This document shows, piece by piece, positions 3,162 through 20,208 of a DNA stretch of 64,000 nt. Each line of letters begins with the position of its first letter. Position 1 is the first letter of the stretch. Under the pieces are notes generated by a model that was not told where the DNA came from, searched no databases, and saw only the letters and a list, made by a program, of their open reading frames with translations. Made by a program: the position numbers and the translations under genes. This stretch comes from Bacillus subtilis subsp. subtilis str. 168 (GTDB lineage Bacteria > Bacillota > Bacilli > Bacillales > Bacillaceae). The stretch lies in contig NC_000964.3 of NCBI RefSeq assembly GCF_000009045.1, positions 1,116,001 to 1,180,000 on the forward strand, given 5' to 3'.

Positions 3162-4631
3162 TTAGGCCGCCTGATCGGCCGCAGCGCTTTTCGCCTTCCT
3201 TGTCATAAGGCTGACTGCCATCATGACCGTGATATTCAAAAGCAGGGCGACGATGCCGACATTCAAGTCTTTTGCGGCTTGCGGCAGAGCCGGAAATAAA
3301 GTGCCGATCGTCGTTTCCGTCATTGTAATATAAGTAACTGCTCCGACACCTGCAATAATGCCGGCGAAAGCTCCTTGCTTTGTCACCATATTATGCTTGA
3401 GCAGGCTGAACAAAAGGGCGGGGAATAGCTGTGTGACAAGGCTGTAGCCCATCAAAAGCAGCGTAACGATGGTATTCCCGCCTTTGAAGGTAAAATACAC
3501 CGAAATCAGCGCAATCACCGGCACTAAAAACTTAGCAAGCGCCGATACTTGCTGTTCTGTCGTGCGGGGCGCGATTACCTTGTACACATTTTTTGCAAAC
3601 AGTGTGGAGGCGGACATTAAGATCATAGACCCTGGCACAAGTGCTGTCAGCAGTCCGGCAGCACCGATAATTCCGACAAACCAAGGGTCAAATGCTTGCA
3701 GAGACAGTCTCAAAAGCGACAAATCCCCGTCTGCGCCATTCAGATCTGGAACTTGCAGGATAGCCGCAAAGCCGACGAAAAGGACGAAGAGCAGGACCAG
3801 CTGGTACAAAGGCATGATGATGGCGTTTTTACGAAACACTTTTGGGTTTTCGGCTGAATACGAAGCGGAAAACGTGTGAGGCCACATGTAAAAACCAAGC
3901 GCTGTCAAGAGTACGGTTGAACTGAACCAGGCCACACTTTGTCCCGATTCGGGGAGCGTAAGAAAGCCAGGCTTTGCCGTTTCAATCTGCTGAAACATGT
4001 CTTGAAATCCGCCGTAGTAATGAATTGGCAAATACACACCTAAAAACAGAACGACAACCAGAATCATGATGTCCTTCACAACCGATATCCAGGCAGACCC
4101 GTGAATGCCTGAAACCATAACATAAACCGTGATGGAAACAGCGCCGATCCAGATGGCAGCGGTCGGGGTGATTTTGCCGTACGAGGTTTCCGATACAATC
4201 AGCCCGAGGCCTTTCAGCTGCAGTACAAGATAGGGAATGAGTGCGGCGATGCCGACCAGTGAAACGAGAATGCCAAGCAGCGGACTGTTGTATTTTTTTG
4301 TGAAAAAATCAGACTGCGACATCAGTTTATGCTGTTTCGCGTACGTCCAAACTGCTGGAAGAAGCCAGTAAGAAAGGATGTAGGCCAGACATCCGTAGGC
4401 GATGATATAAAAGGCTGGACCGCCTTTTCCGTAGGCCCAGCCGCTGCCGCCGAGAAACGTAAAAGTAGTATAAATTTCGCCTGCCATCAAAAGGAAGACG
4501 AAAACAGTTCCGAAGCCGCGCCCTCCGACCGTCCACTGCTCCAGGTTCATGTCTTTTCCTTTTTGGGCGCGTATACCGAGAAAAATACTCAAGAGCAGGA
4601 CACCGAAGATGATGATGAGAGCTGCATTCAT
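3162..4631 (-). CDS. yhjB: Sodium:solute symporter (SSS family, 489 aa)
   Basis: About 13 hydrophobic helices. SSS-like N-terminus (WTVGGRGFG...GEIYTTFTFLGGSG). Confidence 0.88.
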   Translation of the reverse strand: MNAALIIIFGVLLLSIFLGIRAQKGKDMNLEQWTVGGRGFGTVFVFLLMAGEIYTTFTFLGGSGWAYGKGGPAFYIIAYGCLAYILSYWLLPAVWTYAKQHKLMSQSDFFTKKYNSPLLGILVSLVGIAALIPYLVLQLKGLGLIVSETSYGKITPTAAIWIGAVSITVYVMVSGIHGSAWISVVKDIMILVVVLFLGVYLPIHYYGGFQDMFQQIETAKPGFLTLPESGQSVAWFSSTVLLTALGFYMWPHTFSASYSAENPKVFRKNAIIMPLYQLVLLFVLFVGFAAILQVPDLNGADGDLSLLRLSLQAFDPWFVGIIGAAGLLTALVPGSMILMSASTLFAKNVYKVIAPRTTEQQVSALAKFLVPVIALISVYFTFKGGNTIVTLLLMGYSLVTQLFPALLFSLLKHNMVTKQGAFAGIIAGVGAVTYITMTETTIGTLFPALPQAAKDLNVGIVALLLNITVMMAVSLMTRKAKSAAADQAA

Positions 4632-19225: not shown

Positions 19226-19256
19226 AAAGAGGGTTCTTTTTTGAACCCTCTTTTTT
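19224..19256. terminator. Bidirectional terminator between yhjP and yhjQ
   Basis: AAAAAGAGGGTTC-TTTTTT-GAACCCTCTTTTT. Confidence 0.9.
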
Positions 19257-19581
19257 ACGCTGCCATGCTGCGGCATTGTTCAGCACAGGTGAAGCAGGCT
19301 TTCGCACATGCTTGGCAATGATCATGATCGTGCTTTCCGCATTCAGTGCCGCATGCTTCACAAATATCGGCGCAAAGTGCACAAATTTCTTTCATAAACG
19401 GGCTGTCCGTTTGCATGGCTTTGACCGCCAGCGCGCAAATATCCGCGCATTCCCTGTCAAGCCGGATGCATCCGCTGAGATGATGCTGCACGCTTTCTTC
19501 CAAGCATTTAGTGAAACAATGATTGCAAGCCTTCATGCAATCGATGCAAGCCTCAATACAAGCCTCAGAATATTGCTCCAT
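19255..19581 (-). CDS. yhjQ: Cytosolic copper-storage protein Csp3 (four-helix bundle)
   Basis: 108 aa with 19 Cys in CxxxC/CxxC spacing and a C-terminal HDHDH motif. Confidence 0.92.
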   Translation of the reverse strand: MEQYSEACIEACIDCMKACNHCFTKCLEESVQHHLSGCIRLDRECADICALAVKAMQTDSPFMKEICALCADICEACGTECGKHDHDHCQACAKACFTCAEQCRSMAA

Positions 19582-19665
19582 GGTTGATTCCCCCTGTATG
19601 ACAGTATATGGTTTTATGTTTCACGGCTGCATTTGAAAAAAACAGGGGAGTGTGTTTTTAGCTAA

Positions 19666-19698
19666 GGGGATATGTACATATACCCTGAATGGGTATAT
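19666..19698. promoter_or_regulatory. Overlapping palindromes upstream of yhjQ (CsoR-like operator and/or SigB promoter)
   Basis: ATATACCC-TGAAT-GGGTATAT perfect inverted repeat; GGGGATATGT/ACATATACCC second inverted repeat. Confidence 0.5.
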
Positions 19699-20136
19699 CT
19701 AACGTTCCATCAGATAGTATAGGAACCAGACAGCGTGATTTTGTTCATCACGTGCTGCGCGCGTAAAGACGCCTTTCGCTTTTAAGTTTGACGTTTCCTC
19801 GGCCGCACGCAAGTAAAAGTCGACGGTTTCTTGTTCATCTTTAAAAGCGGCGTCCAGTCCTCTTGTGAAATTGTCCGGGCATTCTTCCGTTTGTTTCGGC
19901 ATGATGTGTTTGCCGGTAATTGAACCATACAGTGTGGAAAATTCACGGAGGTGGCGAATCTCGTCACGCCTGATTTCTTCAATCTGTTTTCTGACCTCAT
20001 CGCTGTGGGCGAGTTCGGCAAGCTTGCGGTAGCATTGAATAGCACTGAATTCTCCGTTGATGGCCTTCTGCAAATTCCGAATCAAAACAGGATCTTCCCG
20101 GTATGGCACCGGATAGGGATAGTAGCTGTAATGCAA
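19699..20136 (-). CDS. yhjR: Ferritin/rubrerythrin-like spore protein (145 aa)
   Basis: Two E...DExxH motifs (DEIRH, DEQNH); Tyr/Pro-rich N-terminus; TTG start. Confidence 0.88.
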   Translation of the reverse strand: MHYSYYPYPVPYREDPVLIRNLQKAINGEFSAIQCYRKLAELAHSDEVRKQIEEIRRDEIRHLREFSTLYGSITGKHIMPKQTEECPDNFTRGLDAAFKDEQETVDFYLRAAEETSNLKAKGVFTRAARDEQNHAVWFLYYLMER

Positions 20137-20208
20137 GGGGATTCAACTCCATTCTTAGGAATTGGGCTTCTGTAAAAGTATATGTTGGGCAGGGAGAGAT
20201 GTGCGGAG

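Follow-up and report, generated by a model that had tools for sequence, protein, structure and literature searches.

The closest described counterpart of the element considered here is the copZA operator of Bacillus subtilis CsoR (Smaldone and Helmann 2007, as cited in PMC5171941 and PMC9484137), and the features of type-2 CsoR operators were given by Tan et al. 2014 (PMC3902906) as a TAC/GTA dyad 9 bp apart, TA-rich flanks and bridging C/G runs. The second member of the CsoR family in B. subtilis is YrkD, whose B. licheniformis orthologue is a proven sulfane-sulfur-responsive repressor (PMC9918477). We analysed 64,000 nucleotides of the chromosome of B. subtilis subsp. subtilis str. 168 (NC_000964.3, positions 1,116,001 to 1,180,000; further referred to as the window and numbered from its first letter), where the 117-bp gap between the minus-strand genes yhjR and yhjQ holds a perfect palindrome. 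The product of yhjQ is Csp3, a cytosolic Cu(I) storage protein (PMC5171941, PMC9484137) of a widespread type, and yhjR encodes a rubrerythrin/ferritin-like inner spore-coat protein (PMC7725329, PMC9484137). Judging by its sequence, the palindrome is probably a CsoR-type DNA operator, and CsoR rather than YrkD is its predicted binder. In the literature found, only SigK and GerE are named as regulators of B. subtilis csp3, and our search revealed neither a link of CsoR to yhjQ/csp3 nor a report of a site at yhjR-csp3, and a first-pass annotation made from the letters of this DNA was likewise not aware of a description. CsoR and csp3 are both named in PMC9484137 and PMC5171941, but they are treated separately, and a 2024 review regards the role of Csp3 as largely enigmatic and csp3 as rarely regulated by copper stress (PMC11672702).

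The palindrome (Table 1) is a 21-bp inverted repeat of the 8-5-8 type, ATATACCC / TGAAT / GGGTATAT, which starts at the base next to the yhjR stop codon TAG (19699–19701) and has its near edge 96 nt from the yhjQ ATG (19581), in agreement with the distance of about 100 bp given in the first-pass annotation. It has the dyad and the spacing of type-2 operators, TAC-X9-GTA, as well as their TA-rich flanks in the form of ATA on the 5′ side of TAC and TAT on the 3′ side of GTA. The core of the copZA operator was given in the first-pass annotation as ATACCC-N5-GGGTAT with the same geometry, which is correct. With all 12 fixed bases required, only two copies were found in the 4,215,606-bp genome vs 0.22 expected, the second one being the copZA operator itself, located between the PF02583 repressor gene (csoR) and the 69-codon copZ. 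With two mismatches allowed, the pattern is unremarkable within the window.

A symmetric weight matrix was built from palindromes at the cop loci of 30 genus members (24 distinct sequences), comprising the copZ-proximal operators and the second palindrome lying between copZ and copA, with sites of the yhjQ locus excluded. Among ~4.2 million positions of the genome the yhjQ site took rank 3 with 21.7 bits, directly after the two cop sites (28.9 and 22.3 bits); rank 4 (18.0 bits) belonged to a site in the ydhK promoter, and the best remaining match had 16.4 bits. When the matrix was derived from the copZ-copA sites alone, the yhjQ site moved to rank 2 with 21.9 bits vs 15.1 for the next one. The yhjQ site scores like genuine operators of the genus with a matrix that was not trained on it. 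The earlier assignment of a CsoR-type operator upstream of csp3 is well supported at the level of sequence by the two exact genomic copies, by the rank in the matrix scan and by the dyad with its spacing.

The fourth-ranking site was registered upstream of ydhK (DUF1541; L001:2448–2468, genome 624447–624467), in the spacer of a sigma-A-like promoter (TTTACA ... TAGTAT), i.e. with the layout observed at copZA, and in one genus member (G008) it is present in two copies. We take the ydhK product to be homologous to CopL, a lipoprotein that binds copper; the literature search gave no paper in which ydhK of B. subtilis is connected with CsoR.

Spacing of the dyad bears on the choice between the two proteins of the CsoR family. 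In the same 30 genus members all copZ-proximal sites (30/30) are X9, whereas the yrkE-proximal ones have the form TAC-X8-GTA in 28 of 30 distinct sequences, X7 in two and X9 in none. All species with an intact yhjQ site have X9 there, so that the X8 spacing of YrkD/CstR operators in the genus Bacillus is absent from it. The letters of the arms alone cannot decide between CsoR and YrkD, since the CstR operator of Streptococcus mitis combines nearly identical arms with X9 spacing (PMC8643695). CsoR is, however, favoured because the yhjQ site and all cop sites share X9, which never occurs next to yrkE, and the copper- or sulfur-sensing repressor of the first-pass annotation is narrowed in this way to the former. 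We consider it likely that a protein of this family binds the site, and very likely that the binder is CsoR and not YrkD. At the yrk locus itself the stretch from yrkD to yrkE contains two TAC-X8-GTA palindromes, and one more is located upstream of yrkD (L002:2822–2837, 2889–2904 and 3635–3650). The two preceding yrkE are conserved throughout the genus, and palindromes of this region are probably operators of YrkD, which is CstR-like.

Conservation was followed in 13 subtilis-group species with yhjR directly upstream of csp3, and the palindrome was taken as intact if it had no more than one arm mismatch. It is intact in seven of them: this genome, B. spizizenii TU-B-10, B. mexicanus, B. mojavensis, Bacillus sp. 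N13C7 and two genomes designated G005 and G003. In the species that retain it, the 5-bp centre is almost always different and the letters of the arms stay constant; in G003, with 68% identity of Csp3, both arms are perfect despite diverged flanks. No compensatory double substitutions were detected in the arms among relatives. Fixed arms with a variable spacer would fit a protein reading DNA letters better than a structural RNA stem.

A wider set comprised another 80 csp3 loci, taken from Bacillaceae and families close to them, in which 300 bp upstream of the gene were scanned with a threshold of 12 bits. Sites of at least 12 bits were found in six of these loci vs none among 187,448 control positions of the same loci. 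Four of the matches belong to subtilis-group relatives and two to other genera, namely Siminovitchia thermophila (19.4 bits) and Lederbergia wuyishanensis (19.1 bits). In both latter cases csp3 has no yhjR upstream, the open reading frames there being divergent, and the palindrome is, therefore, not simply the 3′ end of yhjR. Most csp3 genes of the 80 loci have no such site. Neither licheniformis-like nor cereus-like csp3 homologues have a CsoR-type site upstream, so the link between this site and csp3 is not general. Further genomic links of csp3 to copper genes are its position ~7–8 kb from copZA in five genus members (G010, G012, G017, G028 and G042) and its location in G008 directly upstream of the ydhK homologue bearing a CsoR-type site (G008:C1:3335193–3336378), where no site was found upstream of csp3 itself.

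The SigK promoter upstream of yhjR was confirmed by 5′-RACE (rapid amplification of cDNA ends; Eichenberger et al. 2004, PMC517825 supplement). The same supplement enters yhjQ as downstream of yhjR, i.e. as transcribed by read-through, and Lee et al. 2022 (PMC9484137) treat yhjR-yhjQ as a SigK operon, while GerE is given for yhjQ in SubtiWiki-derived tables (PMC6943732 supplement). Thus, the palindrome is situated inside a transcription unit, with the mapped SigK promoter ~480 bp upstream. In the arrays of 2004 the sigK+/sigK− ratio at hour 4.5 was 19.8 for yhjR and 1.2 for yhjQ, and the GerE ratios were 0.32 and 0.16 for yhjR and 0.72 and 0.65 for yhjQ (PMC517825 supplement), which can serve as a hint only, since the yhjQ spot was flagged for quality. 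As the ratios of yhjQ are uncoupled from those of yhjR, something should lie between the two genes, and they suggest a barrier together with a separate start of yhjQ transcription. A candidate for such a start is the block 19603–19630, ~50–90 bp downstream of the palindrome, which is the most conserved part of the gap among 12 subtilis-group species, above the palindrome, and has the spacing and the −10 core identical to those of the mapped P_yhjR. Possibly it is a SigK-type promoter of yhjQ itself, uncalled in the study of 2004. A short GCAG-containing motif recurs ~55–110 nt on the 5′ side of csp3 starts in distant genera (L019–L028, L091, L098), for instance as GTGCAGATT in one large group of other Bacillaceae, and is possibly a part of a shared sporulation promoter or a site of another regulator.

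Based on these data one can tentatively propose that CsoR, bound within the yhjR-csp3 unit, acts as a roadblock that copper can release. As long as cytosolic Cu(I) is low, apo-CsoR on the site past yhjR would hinder RNA polymerase started from P_yhjR in entering csp3. Cu(I)-loaded CsoR would leave the DNA, and csp3 would then be transcribed together with yhjR. A sporulating mother cell would in this case make Csp3, which supplies Cu(I) to the coat laccase CotA, chiefly when copper is available; the palindrome between copZ and copA may work likewise. Binding of CsoR, its release by copper and the roadblock effect are what we infer here. Regulatory consequences of binding, taken alone, seem rather likely, and our estimate for the whole model combines them with binding by the family and with preference for CsoR over YrkD, so that the complete chain is plausible, although it falls somewhat short of probable. 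Csp3 is required for the rise of CotA activity with copper, and spores of the wild type formed with no copper added behave as those of the csp3 deletion (PMC9484137), which is compatible with copper-gated expression of csp3 but is no proof of it. A broader generalization is that CsoR acts as a copper-releasable roadblock inside operons and not only at promoters, gating the Cu(I) store of yhjR-csp3 by cytosolic Cu(I) and so coupling it to CotA metallation, setting the chaperone-to-pump ratio at copZ-copA, and controlling a regulon that includes csp3 and ydhK; in this full extent it is rather unlikely.

Several observations weigh against the proposed roadblock. The palindrome is decayed, interrupted, replaced or deleted in six of the 13 subtilis-group species (B. 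stercoris, B. tequilensis, B. inaquosorum, the DV1-B-1 lineage, B. halotolerans and B. rugosus). One of them, B. stercoris, is a close relative. Selection on the palindrome is, therefore, weak or lineage-specific, and its frequent loss shows it to be dispensable. The ydhK site, unlike that of yhjQ, is kept in 14 of 14 subtilis-group species. Of the two sites in other genera, that of Lederbergia adjoins the ribosome-binding site of a DJ-1/PfpI gene with divergent orientation and possibly serves the latter. The weakest point of the match to CsoR operators is, as far as the letters tell, the short G/C runs with an A/T-rich centre: only CCC and GGG (C and G of the dyad included) surround TGAAT, vs CCC and GGGGG at copZA, and it is G-tract shape that was stressed for CsoR binding (PMC3902906). 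G/C-richer spacers do occur among natural variants in relatives.

Position of the site and expression data belong to the same list of objections. Unlike the copZA and ydhK sites, the yhjQ site overlaps no promoter, and a promoter scan revealed no sigma-70 promoter overlapping the palindrome. Since it lies ~58 bp upstream of the putative yhjQ −35 element, any effect would have to come from a roadblock. Upon artificial induction of SigK the ratio was 2.6 for yhjR and 5.3 for yhjQ (PMC517825 supplement); yhjQ exceeding yhjR is at odds with a tight block in growing cells, except if yhjQ is also transcribed from a promoter of its own, and this ratio, too, is a hint only because of the flagged yhjQ spot. 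In growing cells treated with DAS4 (diallyl tetrasulfane) copZ and copA rose by log2 6.6–6.9 (~100-fold) and yrkE by log2 9.3–9.9, the latter being ~650- to 950-fold activated with allicin or DAS4, whereas yhjQ, the known promoters of its unit being sporulation-specific, changed by only log2 0.3, or 1.24-fold (PMC6943732 supplement). The palindrome, therefore, masks no promoter active in growing cells. This flat response fits a site used only in sporulation and an inert site equally well. In the same arrays csoR rose ~8- to 9-fold with allicin or DAS4 (PMC6943732 supplement), i.e. csoR appears to be stress-inducible, by autoregulation or by read-through.

The best surviving alternative is that the palindrome is an inert or decaying site, appeared by chance or left as a relic, perhaps weakly bound by CsoR but having no regulatory effect. 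Its loss in about half of the close relatives with csp3 retained, its remoteness from any promoter, the unresponsiveness of yhjQ in growing cells and the verdict of the 2024 review on copper stress are all in line with this explanation. Against this explanation it can be said that the sole extra copy of a pattern expected 0.22 times adjoins one of the few copper-protein genes, that the arms remained perfect in a species as distant in Csp3 as G003, and that sites recur on the 5′ side of csp3 in two other genera while the 187 kb of control sequence contain none. We regard inertness as unlikely.

Somewhat less credible is an RNA stem-loop past the yhjR stop codon, which would act on mRNA, e.g. 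by stabilizing the 3′ end after processing, by causing pausing or partial termination, or by spacing the cistrons, with no protein of the CsoR family involved. With −11.6 kcal/mol and z = −3.1 to −3.7 the predicted hairpin is stable, but any perfect palindrome folds, so that stability alone says little. Its place within the transcription unit would suit an RNA element, and the uncoupling of yhjQ from yhjR might equally reflect RNA processing or termination. In B. halotolerans (L014) the palindrome is replaced just past the yhjR stop codon by an unrelated short hairpin with a 6-bp stem and a 3-nt loop. The C to T substitution in the inner arm of B. mexicanus preserves a G-U pair on the transcribed strand, but two of three variants with single substitutions break a pair, and compensatory changes were not seen. 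An intrinsic terminator requires a G+C-rich stem followed by a U-tract; there is no U-tract on the 3′ side of the stem on the minus strand, and the terminator scan gave no terminator-like site in the intergenic region, which upholds the earlier statement that this is not an ordinary terminator. The letters of the arms are common to cop, ydhK and cst-type operators at unrelated loci, which a structural stem does not need, and similar sites are present 5′ of csp3 where no co-directional upstream gene exists. We regard an RNA function of the palindrome as quite unlikely.

Recognition by YrkD as a CstR-like persulfide sensor, which would tie csp3 to sulfur rather than copper stress, is improbable. 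It could be supported by the S. mitis operator with its X9 spacing, by the proven response of B. licheniformis YrkD to sulfane sulfur and by the thiolate-rich nature of Csp3. On the other hand, the X8 spacing typical of yrkE-proximal operators is absent from the yhjQ site, which has the spacing of cop sites, and yhjQ remained flat in growing cells under conditions that raised YrkD targets by log2 9–10. 

The least probable explanation is a SigB-type stress promoter with its spacer and −10 element in the palindrome, gated by a CsoR-family repressor, as the first-pass annotation had it: although GTTAGA-N12-GGGTAT is really present on the minus strand, csp3 is up under stress-inducing and spore-forming conditions in a tiling-array compendium (PMC5171941), and operators do reside in promoter spacers at copZA and ydhK, we regard it as unsupported, since the −35 element matches GTTTAA-N12-15-GGGTAT in only four of six positions at the shortest allowed spacing, 216 of 1110 GGGTAT hexamers of the whole genome (19.5%) have an equal or better one at N12–15, this element overlaps the yhjR stop codon, which constrains it, and is absent from G003, where the palindrome persists, and the known control of yhjQ is by SigK and GerE, while none of the few B. 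subtilis papers found to name yhjQ gives it as SigB-dependent. The allicin and DAS4 arrays discussed above did not activate SigB, as gsiB was flat (PMC6943732 supplement), and thus do not bear on this promoter. Of the initial interpretation as a whole, the predicted CsoR-type operator survives at the level of letters and the gated stress promoter does not.

Other features of the gap are collected in Table 1 together with the genes and promoters. The third half-site reported in the first-pass annotation is there, but it is not conserved in relatives according to the subtilis-group alignment and is for this reason probably incidental and outside the element. An attenuator-like alternative hairpin involving it was set aside in view of this lack of conservation and of the absence of a terminator downstream. 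In mRNAs starting farther upstream, a 7-nt inverted repeat could bring the yhjQ ribosome-binding site into pairing with a segment on its 5′ side; the upstream arm of this repeat has one mismatch in relatives. Folding of the whole intergenic RNA is no better than that of shuffled sequences (z = −0.99).

Table 1. Features of the yhjR-yhjQ region (window positions)
Feature	Positions	Strand	Details	Basis
Published SigK promoter of yhjR	20170–20204	−	−35 GCACA 20200–20204; −10 20177–20185; start 20170	PMC517825 supplement, mapped onto the window
yhjR, rubrerythrin/ferritin-like inner spore-coat protein	19699–20136	−		Open reading frame; Pfam PF02915
SigB-like match	19680–19703	−	GTTAGA-N12-GGGTAT	Present in sequence, not significant
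Candidate CsoR operator	19678–19698		TAC 19681–19683, X9, GTA 19693–19695	Perfect palindrome
Third half-site	19666–19673		GGGGATAT	Pairs with 19676–19686 as overlapping imperfect palindrome
7-nt inverted repeat	19591–19648	−	CCCCTGT 19591–19597 / ACAGGGG 19642–19648 (plus-strand letters)	Repeat scan, RNA fold
Putative yhjQ promoter	19603–19630	−	GCAGC 19626–19630, 14 nt, CCATATACT 19603–19611	Conservation, likeness to P_yhjR
yhjQ = csp3, cytosolic Cu(I) storage protein (DUF326)	19255–19581	−		Open reading frame; Pfam PF03860, 8.7e-20

If the site works, it would for the first time tie a Csp3 gene directly to a copper sensor in B. subtilis, would help to explain why the effect of Csp3 on CotA appears only with added copper, and would provide an example of a CsoR-family repressor acting from within a transcription unit. 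If it is inert, a consensus-perfect operator without effect should be a caution for regulon prediction.

Repressor roadblocks inside operons form a general class, in which the repressor site is located downstream of the promoter within the transcription unit. The yhjQ site has the same placement, but the literature found shows none for proteins of the CsoR family. Among operators of this family, those of type-2 CsoR in Streptomyces lividans (PMC3902906) resemble it in TAC-X9-GTA, in TA-rich flanks, in C/G runs by the dyads and, possibly, in an extra outer GTAC. They differ in having longer G-tracts, which are held to give an A-DNA-like shape, whereas at yhjQ CCC and GGG surround an A/T-rich centre. 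The cst operator of S. mitis (PMC8643695), with the arms ATATACCC ... GGGGTATAT, has nearly the letters of the yhjQ site, while YrkD-associated sites of the genus Bacillus are 1 bp shorter (X8) and are paired upstream of yrkE.

In the same genome the copZA operator is identical to the yhjQ site in the core and in the geometry of the dyad. However, it is G-rich in the centre and is located within the spacer of a promoter active in vegetative cells, whereas the yhjQ site, with its A/T-rich centre, is located in a SigK operon past a stop codon, has more symmetric ATAT flanks and is much less conserved. The second cop palindrome, of the ATATACC-N7-GGTATAT type, is found between copZ and copA (genome 3443545–3443565; L003:2548–2568), preceded by a terminator-like hairpin and immediately followed by the copA ribosome-binding site. 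All 30 genus members have it conserved, in some of them directly past the copZ stop codon. No description of it was met in the literature found. The footprint at copZA was taken here from citing papers and the sequence. The arms of the copZ-copA palindrome are as in the yhjQ site, and it also separates co-transcribed genes; its contact with the copA ribosome-binding site and its genus-wide retention have no equivalent at yhjQ. The copZ-copA palindrome is the nearest parallel to the yhjQ site.

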